Shown: piece by piece, positions 8,001-27,658 of the stretch | Layout: every line of letters starts with the position of its first letter | How positions within the stretch are numbered: the first letter of the stretch is position 1 | NCBI GenBank assembly: GCA_028826165.1 | Contig: JAPDFW010000077.1 | Span: forward strand, 124,001 to 188,000 | Direction of reading: 5' to 3' | DNA: 64,000 nt | Origin: Anaeramoeba ignava BMAN | Lineage: Eukaryota > Protista > Anaeramoebae | The notes under the pieces: model-generated | The model's input: the letters and a program-made list of their open reading frames with translations, nothing else | What the model was told of the DNA's origin: nothing | Database searches by the model: none | Position numbers and translations under genes: made by a program

Positions 8001-10358
8001 TGTTTGGATTTGCATTTTCATTTCCTTGAGGCAAATCTTGCCATTCATAAATTGTTGGACAAACTCTTTTCAATTGAAATTTTTTTGAAGGAAGGGAGTT
8101 TGAGTCATCAAAACGAATAAATTCAGTAGAAATTGAATAAACCACAGAATCTCTTGATTTCATAAATTGCATAATTGAATTCTTGTTGATTTTGCGAATC
8201 ATATCTTTTTCGTCTTGAGTGGAAAAAACATTTTGCAAAAGAAGATTTTCTTTAGAAGATTGATTGATGTGATAGCAAGGTAAAGAATTTGAGTTGAAAA
8301 GCTTAAGACATCTGAAGATGAGTCTTGAACAATGCTCAGATTGCGTATTAAGAGAATAGACCAGAACGCCAGGAATGCATATGTCAATTGTAAAAGGACG
8401 GAAATAATGGATATTATTTGGGGAATTTTGGAAAAATGGAAAATTTGTTGTGATTTCTTGATTGTTCACATATTTCCCAAAGTTGATGAACTCGTCTTGA
8501 TCTTGCGCAAAAGATCGTTCATCATAACTCACAAGGTCTTGAATGGCAAGTTCGGAATCCTCGTCTTTGAAAGTGTTGAATTCGCTATTTGATTCCGAGT
8601 ATTCCTCATTGCTGCCATGCAAATTGAGATGAAAAATCAAATCATCTTGCCAAATAATAATTGAGGCATGCTTTCCTTTTGGAGTTATACTAAGATGATG
8701 CCGATCAAAGTGTAAAATACAAGGAATAAATACTGCTTGATTTGGAAGTTGAATTGAAGTGCAAGAAAACAGCTTTATTTCTGAAAAAACAGCGCAAAGC
8801 AAGAGCTTCAACTTCAGAATTTTTTGATAAAATACCATTTCTAACATGATGATAAAAGCCATGAACCCCAATGTAATTATTAAACATGAGGAAAATTTTG
8901 TAAAACAAATAAAGTTCTCCAGGTGTTTTTAAACGAACAGTGAATTTTATTGAATTTTCTGTTATAACATTTGCAAGTCTGCTCTTAATATCTAAAGAGA
9001 TTGAGTTTTTCTTGGAGTTTTTCAAAGTTTGAATATTTTTGGAATTTTTCGGAATTAACTTAAAATTAAGTGAATTAAATTGAATTAAAGTTGGAATGTT
9101 ATATTGTTTGTTGTGAAAATTCACTAATCCGTTCATTTGATGCAATCCTTTTGCAAATGAATGAATTACTTGTTGATCGTAAATACGTGAAAAATGCTCC
9201 TCGAAATATGAGGATGTTATCAATGTATCTATTTGAAGATGTTCAAATAGATTTTCTTTTTTGGTGTCAATTTTCTTTTTTAATATTTTTAAAATTTCGA
9301 AAATGAAGCTAATATTTTCTTGTTTTTCTTTTAGTTTTGCAAGTAATGTATCTGGTATTTTGTATTCTTTGCATGCTTCAATAAAGAATTCTATGTTATT
9401 ATTTTTATTTCTTTGAATATAAATTTTATAAATGAATTTTAAATTTTAATTTTGAAATGAATTTTGAAATGAATTTTGATTTTAATTTTGAATTTTAATT
9501 TTAATTTTGAAATGAATTTTAAATTTAATTTTGAAATGAATTTTAATTTTGAAATGAATTTTAATTTTGAAATGAATTTTAATTTTGAATTTTAATTTTA
9601 ATTTTGGAATGAATTTTAATTTTGAATTTTAATTTTGAAATGAATTTTAAAATGAATTTTAATATTAATTTTGAAATGAATTTTAATTTTAAATTTTAAT
9701 TTTGAAATGAATTTTAATTTTGAAATGAATTTTAATTTTGAAATGAATTTTAATTTTGAAATGAATTTTAATTTTGAAATGAATTTTAATTTTGAAATGA
9801 ATTTTAATTTTGAAATGAATTTTAATTTTAATTTTGAAATGAATTTTAATTTTGAAATGAATTTTAATTTTAATTTTGAAATGAATTTTAATTTTAATTT
9901 TGAAATGAATTTTAATTTGTGATCAAATGTTAAAAAGAAAAAAATTTGATGATTTTAATTTAAATTTGTAATTGAGGATTTTATTTTAATTTTAATTTTT
10001 AATTGTAATTGAGGTTTTAAATTGAGTTTATATTTGATGATTTTAATTTAAATTTGTAATTGAGGATTTTAATTTTGATTTTTAATTGTAATTGAGGATT
10101 TTATTTTAAAAAAGTTGGTTTTTTGAAATTTAAAAAAGAAAAAAATTTTTTTTTTCTAAAAATAATTTGATGAATTCTTTTTAAAATTAAAAAAGAATTT
10201 ATCAATTTTAAAATTTACAAAGTTGTTTGAGATAAAATTTTAGGATTAATTTTTTTTATAAAATGAGTAAGTTGGAAATATAAATGGGGAATATTTGTTA
10301 TATCAAGTTTTTCTTGTAAAATATTTTCAACCCAATAAATTACATTTTTATCTTCCAT
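5060..10358 (-). CDS. Large protein with N-terminal calponin-homology domain and multiple divergent PH-like domains (paralog A); one long intron (about 10220-9420) and apparent frameshifts near 9300, 8860-8760 and 7500
   Basis: ATG at 10358 gives MEDKNVIYWVENILQEKL..FIKKINPKIL, then NNIEFFIEACKEYKIP (CH-like). ORFs 8705-9223, 7438-8871 and 5060-7396 contain repeated beta-rich units ending in an FxxxxxxxxF helix, typical of PH folds. Confidence 0.55.
9430..9920. repeat. Intronic satellite (TTTTGAAATGAATTTTAA)n
   Basis: Tandem 18-mer; source of the spurious MNFNFE ORF. Confidence 0.9.
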
Positions 10359-23382: not shown

Positions 23383-26300
23383 TCAAAATTTGAATAAGGA
23401 ATCTTCTTTTGTTTCTTTTTTCTTATCATTATCAAAATTTAAATCTAAATCAAAAAGTGAATTTTGTTTTTGTTTTAAATCTAAATCTAAATCTAAATCA
23501 AAAAGTGAATCTTTTTTTTGATTTTGTTTTTGTTTTTATTTAAATCTAAATCAAAAAGTGAATCTTTTTTTTGATTTTGTTTTTGATTTTGATTTTGATT
23601 TTGTTTTAAATTTAAATCTAAAAGTGAATCTTGTTTTTGTTTTTGATTTTTAAATTGAAATCTAAAAGTGGATTTTGATCTTGTTTTTGATCTTGTTTTT
23701 CTTCTTGTGAATCTTTTGCAAGAGAAAGATATTTTCTTGGAGTTTCTTTCTTTTTTGAAAGTTTGGAAATTTTAATTTTTTTTTGTTTTGATTCTTGATT
23801 TGATTCTTGATTTTGTTTTTCTTTTGGTTTTGATTGATTTGATTTTGGTTTTGATTTTGATTGTGTAAAAATATTAAAATCATCTTCTTTTGGTTTTATT
23901 TGATTTTGATTTGATTTTGATTGTGTAAAAATATTAAAATCATCTTCTTTTTGGTTTTAATTGATTTTGATTTGATTGTGATTTTGTAAAAATATTAAAA
24001 TCATCCTCTTTTTGTTTTGATTGATTTTGATTTAATTTTGATTTTGTGAAAATATTAAAATCATCCTCTTTTGTTTTTGGTTGATTTGATTCTTGATTTT
24101 GTTTTTCTTTTGGCTTTGATTGATTTTGATTTAATTTTGGATTTGTAAAAATTTCAAAATCATTCCCTTTCTTTTTGTTATCTTCTTGCTTTTTTGTTTC
24201 TTTTATTTCTTGATTTTGATTTGAAAAAAATGAAATTGGAGTTATTGGAGAATTTTTTTTTAAATCTTCCTTAATAGAATCTTGAGAATAAATTTGTAAA
24301 TTATCATATTTACTAGTTTGAGAGTTTGAAATAATAGATAATTTTGATTCTTTTTTTGATTCTTCTTTTGGTTTTTCTTTTGATTTTGTTATTGATTTTG
24401 TTATTGGTATTTTTTCTTTTGATTTTGGTGATAAAAGAGGATTTAAATCAGCAAATTGAAATGGATCATGATCATCTTGAGTAATTGCTTTTTTTTCTGG
24501 TTTTTTCTCTTTAATTTGTTGTTTTTTTCCAAATGAAGATTTTGGAATCTCGTTTTTTTTGATCATACAAATTTGTTGAATCACATTTTCAAATGCCTTT
24601 TTAATAAGTAAAACTTGATATTCCAATTCAAATTTAGAATTAAGTAGTAAATTTGATAAAAAACTTAAAATCTTGTTTCCAATGATTTTATAATCAATAT
24701 TATTATTTTTCATAATTGATGAACATAATTTGAATATTTCAATAATAATATAAGAATTATCCTTTTTTAAAGAGATTTTTTCAATTAAAGGAAATAAATT
24801 TTGAATGATAATTCCAGATTCAAGTCGATGAGCAAGTTGAGATAAAGAATCAAGAAGAATGATTAATGAAGAATCATTTAAATCTGAAAAAGATGATAAA
24901 ATTAGTGAAAATATTTTGTTCTTTAAAATATCTGACTCAATTTTAATGTAAATTTTTGGTAAATCTTGCAAAATTTGGTTTCTGATTTGTAAATTTTGTG
25001 AATGAAATGAATTCTGAATAAAATCAGTTAGTTCTTTTTAAATTTCAAAAAAATTTTTTGTTAAAGTTAAAATTAAAATTAAAATTAAAATTAAAATTAA
25101 AATTAAAATTTTTTTGTTTTTAATTTCATACCATTATGCGTTGAAATATCATTTCCTAAAAGCTCTATAATTAAATCTAAATTCTTAATCAATGATAAAT
25201 TAACTTCCAATGGTTCTGTTAATGAGATAAATTTTTGAATCTGTGGATAAATTGATTGTAAAAAATTCGTTTTGAGAAAATGTTTTGATAAAACAAGGAG
25301 AATTTCAATTAAAACAGAAATAAAAGAATCTTGTTTTAACAAATCAGATAAAACTTGGGTAATTTGATTGATTTGAGAGGGATTGAAATAAGGAATAAAC
25401 CATTTAAGTGAATTTAAAACGATTTTTTGGAAATGTGGTTTTTGTTGATTAAATTTTGAAAGGAATTCAATAACTTTCGTTTCAAAATCAATTAAATAAT
25501 CACTCAAAATGAAATTTTCAAATGAAATTCTTTTGCTTGGATCTAATTTGATCAAATTTATGATAATTTTTTGAAGTTGAACTGGCAAATGTTTTTTTTG
25601 AAAAAGAGAAGTTTCAATATCATTAATTTTTGCTTTGTATAATTGGATATTTTGGTTTGTATCTAGTAAATAATCTTGAGATGATTTTGCATAAATATTA
25701 GCAAGTAAACATCCAAATGAAAAAATATCAGATGAAAAAGTTGTTTTTTTTGTATTAAAAATTTCTGGAGAAAGATAATCCAAATTTGGAAAAGGATTGA
25801 AAATCTTATTGTTATTCTTTTTTTTTAAAACAAATTTAAATTTAAATTTAAATTTAAATTAAAATTAAAATTAAAATTTACTTCATTTCTTTTTTTTTCA
25901 AAAGAAAATTGAGCTTTTTCTTGTTGTTTTTTGATTTGCATTGAAAATATTAAATTGATTTTCCATTCCATTTTTTCATTAAGATAAACACATTCAGGAT
26001 TTAAATTAACATGAACTTGTTTGAATTTTTTATTAAGAAATTGCATTCCTTCAATTAATTGAATAAAACCTGATAAAATCTATAATAAAAAAAATTAATA
26101 AAAAAATTAATTAAAAAAAATTAATTAAAAAAAATTATTTAAAAAAAATTTTACTTTAAATTCTTGAATAAATTCAGTTTCAATTTCAGTTTCACTTTCT
26201 TTTTGTTTGTTTATTAAAAAATAACTGTTTTTTAAAGAGTTTTTAATTGGTTCAATTGCAAAAAAAATTAAATCTTTTTCTTCAAAAATTGGAGATAAAA

Positions 26301-26538
26301 CTTTTAAAAAAATTTCATTTTCAATTTGAATTTTAGTTTGTTTTTCAATTTCTTTTTCAAGAAAATTAAGAAAATTTTTAATTTTTCCTTGAATAAATTT
26401 TTTTTCAAAAATAATTAAAGAAACGTTTTTTAAAGTTATTTTATCAATTGCAGAAACAATTTTAAAAATATTATTATTATTAATATTATTATTAGAATTA
26501 ATTTGTGAAATTTCTTTATTAATTTCAAAATTTTGCAT
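23383..26538 (-). CDS. SCY1-like (SCYL2/Scy1) pseudokinase with HEAT repeats and a motif-rich tail; several short introns and homopolymer frameshifts
   Basis: Degenerate kinase motifs (AIEPI, VHVNLNPECVYLNEKMEWKI, PNLDYLSPE, SSDIFSFGCLL), helical repeats, tail with DPF, DDFNIF and LLDL/LFDLD repeats. Confidence 0.75.
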
Positions 26539-26640
26539 TTTAAGAAAATTGAAGAAAATTGAGTAAAAAAAAAATGAAAAAAATTTTTCCAACTTTTAAA
26601 TTTATTTTTGAATTAAAAATTTAATAATTAAAAAAAAAAA

Positions 26641-26714
26641 ATTTAATGAATTTTCAAAAAATAATTGTCTTTTAAATAAAGATTTAAATTATTTTTATCA
26701 TTTACACACTAAAT
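26641..26714 (-). promoter_or_regulatory. SECIS element (form 2) in the 3' UTR of the Rdx-family gene
   Basis: RNA reads AUUUAGUG-uguaa-AUGAU-AAAAAUAAUU-u-AAA-UCUUU-auuua-AAAGA-c-AAUUAUUUUU-UGAA-aauu-CAUUAAAU: 8-bp helix I, AUGA/GA core, perfect 10-bp helix II, AAA bulge, apical mini-stem. Confidence 0.88.
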
Positions 26715-26790
26715 TCTTTTTTTTATATATATAAATTTTAATTCCAAAAATAAAAATAAAAAGAAAAATAAAAAGGAATAAAATTTGTTT

Positions 26791-27496
26791 TTAATCAAGT
26801 TTAAAATGTTTTTTAACAAGTGAAAGTGCTTCTTCTTGTGTTGGAAATCGATATTCAGTATCTTTACTAAAAAGTAATACTTGAGGTTCTGAAGTTTGAA
26901 CATCACAAACGTAAATGTCAAATTGATCAGTATAACCTTTTTTACCAAAGACTTTGATTCCTTCTATGTTTTCATTAAGAATATCTCGAATATCTACAAA
27001 ATGTTCATAAGTTCCCTTTTTATATTTTTATTATAAATATATTTTATATTTTTATTTCATGTTTTTGTTATATTTTTATTATAAATTTATTTTATATTTT
27101 TATTATAAATTTATTTTTATATTTTTATTATAAATATATTTTATATTTTTATTATAAATATATTTTATATTTTTATTATAAATATATTTTATATTTTTAT
27201 TATAAATATATTTTATATTTTTGTTATAAATATATTTTATATTTTTATTATAAATATATTTTATATTTTTATTATAAATATATTTTATATTTTTATTATA
27301 AATATATTTTATATTTTTATTTCATATTTTTGTTATATTTTTATTATAAATATATTTTATATTTTTATTATAAATTTATTTTATATTTTTATTATATTTT
27401 TATTTCATGTTTTTGTTATATTTTTATTATAAATTTTACCTTGCATCATCCTAATTCCAAAAAAATACAAACTCTATATTTAATTTCTCGACTCAT
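26791..27496 (-). CDS. Rdx-family (SelW/SelT/SelH-like) selenoprotein, about 93 aa; exons 27496-27440 and 27015-26791; UGA at 27448-27446 read as Sec
   Basis: MSREIKYRVCIFLELG-U-CK|GTYEHFVDIRDILNENIEGIKVFGKKGYTDQFDIYVCDVQTSEPQVLLFSKDTEYRFPTQEEALSLVKKHFKLD*. Rdx hallmarks FxIxV and LLFSK..RFP..EE; phase-0 GT-AG intron; SECIS about 75 nt after the stop. Confidence 0.85.
27020..27437. repeat. Intronic satellite (TATATTTTTATTATAAATATATTT)n, 24-mer
   Basis: Tandem 24-mers fill the selenoprotein intron. Confidence 0.9.
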
Positions 27497-27658
27497 TTTT
27501 AAAATATTTTTTGAATAAAAAATGAAAGAAAATGAAAGAAAATGAAAGAAAATGAAAAAGAAAATGAAAAAATGAAAATTTTTTAATTTTTCATTTTTCA
27601 TTTTTCATTTTTCATTTTCCTTTTTTATTATTTTAATTCGTATTTAAATTATTTAAAA

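Follow-up and report, generated by a model that had tools for sequence, protein, structure and literature searches.

Can a TGA codon inside a short reading frame be read as selenocysteine (Sec, U), given that a hairpin resembling a selenocysteine insertion sequence (SECIS) follows the frame? This question is raised by a locus on the minus strand of a stretch of 64,000 nucleotides (nt) from the genome of Anaeramoeba ignava BMAN. The whole stretch, called the window below, covers positions 124,001 to 188,000 of contig JAPDFW010000077.1, which is labelled C78 in our analysis, from an assembly of 42.8 Mb. Judging from the sequence, we consider it very probable that the locus is a two-exon nuclear gene for an Rdx (SelW/MIEN1-like) selenoprotein of about 93 residues, in which UGA-17 is read as Sec.

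Exon structure of the gene

Exon 1 (27496-27440, minus strand) consists of 57 nt, or 19 codons starting with the ATG at 27496, and its translation is MSREIKYRVCIFLELG-U-CK. The in-frame TGA, which is the proposed Sec codon, is codon 17 (27448-27446, minus strand), and the codon before it is GGA (Gly). The exon is followed by an intron of 424 nt (27439-27016, minus strand) with the form GTAAAA...AG, whose donor GT at 27439-27438 would retain the TGA in the message and whose acceptor AG is located at 27017-27016. A 24-nt tandem repeat occupies this intron with 16.8 copies. Exon 2 (27015-26791, minus strand) contains 74 codons and the stop codon TAA (26793-26791), and it covers helix 1 to helix 2 of the Rdx/SelW fold. 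Both exons are joined in frame by the GT-AG pair in phase 0, and their GC content is 28% in each case as compared to 2.6% in the intron. An exon of 57 nt with TGA at codon 17, spliced in frame from GT 27439 to AG 27016 into an exon of 75 codons, was already put forward in a preliminary description of this locus; the exon is present at these minus-strand coordinates, and so is the splice geometry, with the 75 codons being 74 codons and TAA.

Two other junctions were tried and rejected. A mini-intron of 22 nt (GT...AG before GA-TGA), located at the intron position of the paralogs, breaks the frame and meets a stop codon. A second acceptor AG, 27 nt deeper in exon 2, is out of frame.

The product of exon 2 as an Rdx protein

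Exon 2 was searched and modelled alone; strand 1 of the fold is encoded in exon 1 and lies outside the model. The exon-2 product matches the Pfam family PF10262 (Rdx) with 21.7 bits and an E value of 2.3e-4 over profile positions 15-74 of 74, and the unmatched positions 1-14 are exactly the part that exon 1 would supply. A genome-wide search with the same profile returned four loci, namely those on the contigs labelled C71, C137 and C15 and the window gene, which is the weakest of them. By BLASTP, exon 2 matches the post-Sec part of the CGGU paralog on C137 over the whole exon (E value 4e-7, 32% identity), and hhalign aligned it with four relatives (C71, C137, C15 and another one on C66) with 87% probability and an E value of 3.8e-6. 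The window protein is the most divergent among the Rdx genes of the genome, with 23-32% identity to its paralogs. When a profile consisting of three paralogs and the window protein was compared with the PDB, it was found to match MIEN1/C17orf37 (2ljk, E value 2.4e-11), an Agrobacterium SelW-like protein and mouse SelW (2npb).

The predicted structure points to the same family. Modelled by AlphaFold, the exon-2 product has a predicted local distance difference test (pLDDT) score of 82.9 and a predicted template modelling (pTM) score of 0.71, and its elements follow the order helix, strand, strand, strand, helix. In the comparison by VIA-align, ranks 1-6 are all SelW-related (2obk, 2oka, 3dex, 2p0g, 2fa8 and 2ojl), with Z scores of 7.6-8.1 and root-mean-square deviations of 1.8-1.9 Å over 64-67 of the 74 residues, while the next match has a Z score of 6.1. 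A Foldseek search of the PDB with the exon-2 model gave nothing significant, and double-stranded RNA-binding domain folds competed there; we account for this competition by the model being without strand 1. A sequence search of the PDB with exon 2 alone returned nothing relevant, a word-index search returned the public A. ignava protein only, and a six-frame search of the organism's own genome returned only the locus itself.

From these results we regard it as established that the exon-2 product belongs to the Rdx family. The Rdx/SelW fold had been proposed beforehand from the letters alone, and it is borne out by the Pfam and BLASTP E values as well as by the six best structural matches.

The SECIS-like hairpin

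The second proposed component of the gene is a hairpin with the form-2 SECIS layout (26716-26640, minus strand), whose helix I starts about 74 nt 3' of the stop codon. Its parts follow one another in the order helix I, ATGA of the core (26701-26698), a helix II of 10 base pairs (bp), the AAA bulge (26685-26683, 12 nt after ATGA), a mini-stem of 5 bp, the return of helix II and GA of the core (26655-26654), all on the minus strand. The form-2 layout is defined by an AUGA...GA core, a helix II of 9-12 bp, AAR at a distance of 11-12 nt and a mini-stem, and the hairpin has each of them. A hairpin with all SECIS features about 75 nt past the stop codon was likewise part of the preliminary description, and we found every part where it had been placed. 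The fold energy is -18.4 kcal/mol, with z = -3.1 when compared to shuffled sequences, and the element is almost pure A/U, with a GC content of 12-13%. It is situated on the right strand, after the stop codon and before the start of the next gene, within a 3' spacer of 255 nt.

We then consider how often such a hairpin arises by chance. A rule-based SECIS scanner reported the candidate as the single site in the 64-kb window, the expectation from shuffled windows being 0.15 sites each. Run over 200 kb from elsewhere in the genome, the same scanner reported 2 sites, and none at the stricter values which the candidate meets. Based on the scanner, the chance of a SECIS-grade hairpin in the 255-nt spacer on one strand is about 1e-3.

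The hairpin was also compared with five reference SECIS elements of the same genome, which belong to the SPS2 gene, to the genes on C71, C15 and C137 and, added later, to a gene on C66. All of them have ATGA, a distance of 11-12 nt, AAA, a short apical stem and GA. Two covariance models were built without the candidate, R1 from four SECIS elements and R2 from five. With R1, the candidate scores 23.6 bits and is the best site in the window, searched as 1-26050 and 26200-64000. With R2, it scores 26.6 bits (E value 0.014) and is the best site in 26200-64000, which is the part of the window searched with this model; elsewhere in the genome, R2 reached no more than 21.8 bits over 100 kb. Across the six SECIS elements, helix II is 93% paired with compensatory changes in 9 of its 10 pairs, and none of 500 shuffles was as good. 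When the registers of this alignment were slid, the pairing went down to 35-62%. Furthermore, SECIS_1 (RF00031) is the top Rfam family in the 191-nt 3' region, with an end-to-end alignment of 15.6 bits and an E value of 1.9, and an Rfam scan over 2 kb returned no SECIS. Taken as a prediction from sequence, the assignment of the hairpin 26716-26640 as the form-2 SECIS of the gene is supported.

At relaxed scanner settings, a run of false SECIS-pattern matches was observed in an 18-nt tandem repeat made of ATGAATTTTAATTTTGAA-like units (9536-9884, plus strand). This repeat is a warning for pattern-based SECIS searches in the A. ignava genome.

Other Rdx-type selenoprotein genes in the genome

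Besides the window gene, there are at least four Rdx-like genes with a TGA and a SECIS, having the motifs CLVU, CGGU, xGU and TSGU, and so this anaerobe has at least five Rdx-type selenoprotein genes. The gene on C71 (143335-143568, plus strand) is a single-exon SelW with the motif CLVU and one in-frame TGA, which matches PF10262 at full length with 66.3 bits; its form-2 SECIS (L016 1846-1889) is located about 115 nt past the stop codon. The gene on C137 (L018 953-980 and 1425-1659, plus strand) has two exons, the motif CGGU and a repeat intron of about 445 nt. Its exon 1 ends with C-G-G, and its exon 2 begins with the rest of the Gly codon followed by TGA; the SECIS is at L018 1790-1830. The gene on C15 (L017 1444-1690, minus strand), with the motif xGU, is a paralog of the one on C137 with 63% identity after Sec. 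Its GA-TGA exon is preceded by an intron over 1.4 kb long that consists of an 11/12-nt microsatellite, its exon 1 lies beyond the retrieved locus, and its SECIS is at L017 1273-1313. Finally, the gene on C66 (L024 1620-2024, minus strand) is Rdx-like and has a signal peptide, the motif TSGU, a phase-1 intron before the TGA and a SECIS at L024 1515-1558. It was found through the SECIS covariance model (38.9 bits) only and is absent from the results of the Pfam Rdx search.

The window gene shares with the genes on C137 and C15 not only the family but also the GGA-TGA codon pair and the repeat-filled introns, and it shares with those on C71, C137 and C15 the same SECIS layout of ATGA, 12 nt, AAA, mini-stem and GA. 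The intron position is different. In the genes on C137, C15 and C66, the intron is in phase 1 inside the Gly codon before Sec, whereas in the window gene it is in phase 0 and two codons after Sec. The first Cys of the motif is kept on C71 (CLVU) and C137 (CGGU); in the window gene it is lost, and C and K are added. A parallel to this is the C66 gene, where Sec again lacks the partner Cys of CxxU, the body is Rdx-like and the SECIS is of form 2. It has a signal peptide while the window gene has none, but the window gene has a Cys directly after Sec.

Position of the UGA and the redox motif

In the Rdx family, the redox position is the place where strand beta-1 ends and helix alpha-1 begins, and Sec is found there. 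When the sequences are aligned at Sec, RVCIFL-ELG-U of the window gene matches QVSITF-CGG-U of the paralog on C137, and the GGA-TGA codon pair is common to the window gene and three paralogs (C15, C137 and C66). In the alignment, exon 2 begins at the paralog residue directly after Sec, which leaves two extra residues (C and K) between Sec and helix 1 when compared to the paralogs. The UGA is located at the Sec/Cys position of the relatives, though the alignment needs these two extra residues after U. The motif is E-L-G-U and then C; the predicted Sec is present, and Glu takes the place of the usual first Cys of CxxU/CxxC. It had been proposed earlier that the UGA falls in CxxU. The position of Sec was nearly right in that proposal, but the motif is ELGU-C and not CxxU.

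A motif such as ELGU can also be expected in a decaying paralog, that is, a former CxxU gene which has lost its resolving Cys and whose UGA-17 ends translation after 16 residues. The divergence of the gene agrees with decay, since it is the most divergent Rdx gene of the genome with the weakest Pfam score and no ortholog was found. However, exon 2 is intact over its 74 codons and is predicted to adopt the Rdx-domain fold with confidence, and no defect is seen in the splice sites, the phase or the SECIS. In addition, the SECIS-bearing Rdx-like gene on C66 (TSGU) is likewise without the first Cys, which suggests a family trait in this organism instead of decay. We therefore give the decay of the gene hardly any weight.

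The public gene model and the choice of splice donor

Contrary to the earlier expectation that standard gene callers miss this gene, the exon-2 product is 100% identical to the NCBI hypothetical protein M0811_09024 of Anaeramoeba ignava. This protein has 82 amino acids and reads MSREIKYR and then GTYEHF, i.e., it goes directly into exon 2. Therefore, the donor used by the annotators must be the GT after codon 8, which removes 33 nt together with the TGA. Deduced in this way from the 82-residue protein, the alternative donor is GTTTGT, with its GT at 27472-27471 on the minus strand. The gene was thus annotated, but in a mis-modelled form with the UGA spliced away.

If the public model is right, the GTTTGT donor yields an 82-residue Rdx-like protein without Sec or redox loop, and the hairpin is a chance structure or a relic. 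The genome project did map RNA-seq reads, and the same paper gives an A+T content of 80.65% overall and 91.86% in introns (PMC11550330). A search for sequencing runs gave a single run, of unknown type, that holds 40% of the words. In the public protein, EIKY is similar to the strand-1 consensus before the motif in the paralogs, and the residue encoded first in exon 2 aligns with the one right after U in the paralogs. A GTT-type donor is present in the genome, A/U hairpins are common, and matches of the scanner type occur about once per 100 kb.

On the other hand, the composition of the disputed 33 nt is that of an exon. They have 30% GC as compared to 28% in the exons and 2.6% in the intron, which has a probability of about 1e-3 under the genome-wide intron GC of 8%, and a far lower one under the composition of the gene's own intron. 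This favours the donor that retains the TGA. The donor type favours it too, because GTA is the beginning of 8 of the 9 other donors read in the genome, one of them being GTAAAA itself, while GTTTGT is found in none of the 9 and the single GTT-type donor is GTTAAT in a gene on C73. The tandem repeat begins immediately after GTAAAA, as in other introns read in this genome. A SECIS is useless unless the message keeps the UGA, which again favours retention; the public model has to leave the SECIS-grade hairpin on the right strand of the spacer to a chance of about 1e-3 or less, as judged from the scanner and the covariance models, and the GGA-TGA pair common to three paralogs also speaks against it. 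Because gene predictors are unable to retain a TGA in frame, a public model without it was to be expected irrespective of how the transcript is really spliced. Judging from composition and donor type, we infer that the TGA-retaining donor at 27439 is used, and we consider it unlikely that the public model is correct.

A further arrangement is that both donors are used, giving one Sec-containing and one Sec-less isoform. Either donor joins in frame to the same acceptor, and the fold of exon 2 is kept in both products. GTTTGT, with no counterpart among the nine donors read, makes the double use very unlikely in our estimation, and the exclusive use of GTAAAA is preferred.

Selenocysteine machinery of A. 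ignava

Reading UGA-17 as Sec also needs an organism that decodes Sec. The tRNA-Sec gene of A. ignava (C85) has 90 nt, the anticodon TCA, a D stem of six pairs and a long extra arm, and it scores 70.3 bits in Rfam. It stands in a context of 20% GC, which indicates that it is nuclear and does not come from the sulfate-reducing symbionts. The SPS2 gene (C64:1028999-1031640) has a TGA at the known Sec/Cys site K-G-U-S-C-K, at least 4 introns filled with tandem repeats, and its own form-2 SECIS (L003 2845-2890). SepSecS (C115) was found with 404 bits. An open reading frame of 351 amino acids on C118 is PSTK-like; its single family match is eukaryotic PSTK with 73.8 bits, below the equivalog cut-off. 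The eEFSec gene (C24:177997-181581) has at least 3 exons, and both the eukaryote-specific third domain and the C-terminal RIFT domain of Pfam are above their cut-offs. The best match of TIGR00475 was rejected as eEFSec because it was EF-1 alpha, the true eEFSec being the split match on C24. For SBP2, the candidate is a multi-exon gene (C73:329300-331300) with a weak L7Ae domain after a Lys-rich stretch.

The machinery search proposed in the preliminary description was thus clear for tRNA-Sec, SPS2, SepSecS and eEFSec, while PSTK stayed below its threshold and SBP2 is represented by a candidate only. Its view that the organism decodes Sec is confirmed, independently of the window gene, by the tRNA-Sec, the Sec-containing SPS2, SepSecS, the PSTK-like protein, eEFSec and the four other genes with TGA and SECIS. 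As predicted from these genes, a near-complete eukaryotic Sec pathway is encoded in the A. ignava genome.

Two side observations were made in these genes. The last intron of the SPS2 gene contains a non-repetitive island at about L003 2190-2290. In the L7Ae gene on C73, long Asn/Gln-rich repeats follow the L7Ae domain, and one intron has the GTTAAT donor.

Weighing of the evidence

Several observations weigh against the interpretation of the locus as a selenoprotein gene. With regard to the protein, the Pfam search suggested beforehand did give its E value of 2.3e-4 on exon 2 alone, but the 21.7 bits are 0.9 bit below the gathering cut-off of 22.6. No ortholog was found, as an exhaustive phmmer search of 1.84 billion representatives returned only M0811_09024. 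The first Cys of the motif is absent, and two additional residues separate U from the helix. With regard to the transcript, the public model M0811_09024 takes a different donor, and a GTT-type donor does occur once elsewhere in the genome. With regard to the decoding, SBP2 is not secured, and the candidate gene on C73 matches eL8 in the PDB with 21.5 bits as compared to 16.4 for human SBP2.

The remaining points concern the hairpin. Its 15.6 bits for SECIS_1 are to be compared with the Rfam gathering threshold of 35. Under the same threshold, the SECIS of the C137 gene passes with 39.5 bits and that of the SelW gene on C71 fails with 20.1 bits; we account for the latter by the limits of the Rfam model in an A/T-rich genome. 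In the whole-genome search with R1, 150 of the about 94,500 candidates of the first look received a score; the search recovered the training elements and, on C66, one true SECIS that was new, and the window hairpin is not among the 8 best. Its score is therefore not significant genome-wide, and the argument for it rests on position.

Proposed decoding and redox chemistry

The sequence features, the Rdx membership of exon 2, the presence of the Sec machinery and the similarity of the hairpin to a SECIS are shown by the analysis, and we infer the insertion of Sec, the use of the donor and the redox chemistry. The scheme below follows the standard eukaryotic pathway. The messenger RNA would keep all 57 nt of exon 1 through the GTAAAA donor at 27439. 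Ser-tRNA(Sec) would be phosphorylated by PSTK and converted by SepSecS to Sec-tRNA(Sec) with selenophosphate supplied by SPS2. The SECIS, about 90 nt past the stop codon, would recruit a SECIS-binding protein of the L7Ae type together with eEFSec-GTP-Sec-tRNA(Sec), and Sec would be delivered at UGA-17, about 320 nt 5' of the SECIS core once the intron is removed, instead of termination. The product would adopt the Rdx fold, and its Sec would be located at the N terminus of helix 1. With no Cys at the usual partner position, the role of the resolving thiol would fall to Cys18, which adjoins Sec, or to Cys10 in strand 1; otherwise Sec may act alone with an external thiol.

Neighbouring features

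Just 5' of the start codon, promoter-like arrays of the TTTTTCA/TGAAAAA motif are located at 27519-27629 (minus strand), in tandem with a period of 5-13. The motif TTTTCATTTT and its complement have 113 copies in the window as compared to about 22 in shuffled sequences, an excess of about 5-fold, and it is found at many other intergenic places as well. Short arrays of the TTTTCATTTT type stand directly upstream of the ATGs of several genes on either strand, among them genes near the C71, C15 and C137 loci. With its role suggested by this placement, the TTTTCATTTT motif may be a core promoter element. Downstream of the gene, the neighbouring open reading frame is at 26125-26592 on the minus strand.

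Significance

Together with the other loci described above, the window gene shows that a Sec system is at work in A. ignava, an anaerobic amoeba that lives freely and belongs to the Metamonada, and that the organism has several SelW-like selenoproteins. If our interpretation is true, the public gene model M0811_09024 is to be corrected by the model that retains the UGA. Mis-calling of genes that contain UGA is a well-known and ordinary annotation error, which makes the find useful rather than surprising. As far as the literature searched shows, these loci would be the first reported cases of selenoprotein genes in Anaeramoebae. The use of Sec by metamonads has been documented in Spironucleus and Preaxostyla. 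For the genus Anaeramoeba, the sole remark on Sec that we found is in a 2026 preprint, which reports two tRNA-Sec genes in A. pumila, and the string "selen" is absent from the text of the genome paper (PMC11550330).

If Sec and the adjacent Cys do work as a pair, this would be an active site new to the Rdx fold, and the ExxU-C motif, lacking the first Cys, could show how far the Rdx redox centre varies. We put forward only tentatively that Anaeramoeba has lineage-specific Rdx-type selenoproteins in which the CxxU pair has been given up (ExxU-C and TxxU), and that Sec may pair with the adjacent Cys as a vicinal selenenylsulfide.

Comparison with known families

When compared to the SelW/Rdx family PF10262, to which SelW, SelT, SelH, SelV, Rdx12 and MIEN1/C17orf37 belong, the window protein has a similar length of about 90 residues. 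The window gene also follows the family with the predicted Sec where strand 1 ends and helix 1 starts, with a putative SECIS in the 3' untranslated region, and with the order of the fold after strand 1. The differences lie around the active site. The family is defined by CxxU/CxxC while the window protein has ExxU with Cys following at once, its helix 1 is about 4 residues longer than in the paralogs, and its sequence identity to any known Rdx member is low. The proposed U-C pair resembles the Cys-Sec pair of thioredoxin reductase with the order reversed.

Of the parts that make up the Rfam SECIS_1 family, the hairpin of the window lacks none, from the AUGA/GA core through helix II and the AAA bulge to the apical mini-stem. 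Directly above the core it has a U-U pair, in contrast to A-U in the other five SECIS elements of the genome. What is already known in this comparison is that Rdx/SelW-type selenoprotein genes occur with a form-2 SECIS and that such genes are mis-annotated in this manner; what is unusual is that the motif is ExxU-C, that the intron has shifted, and that a single anaerobe has so many Rdx-type selenoprotein genes.

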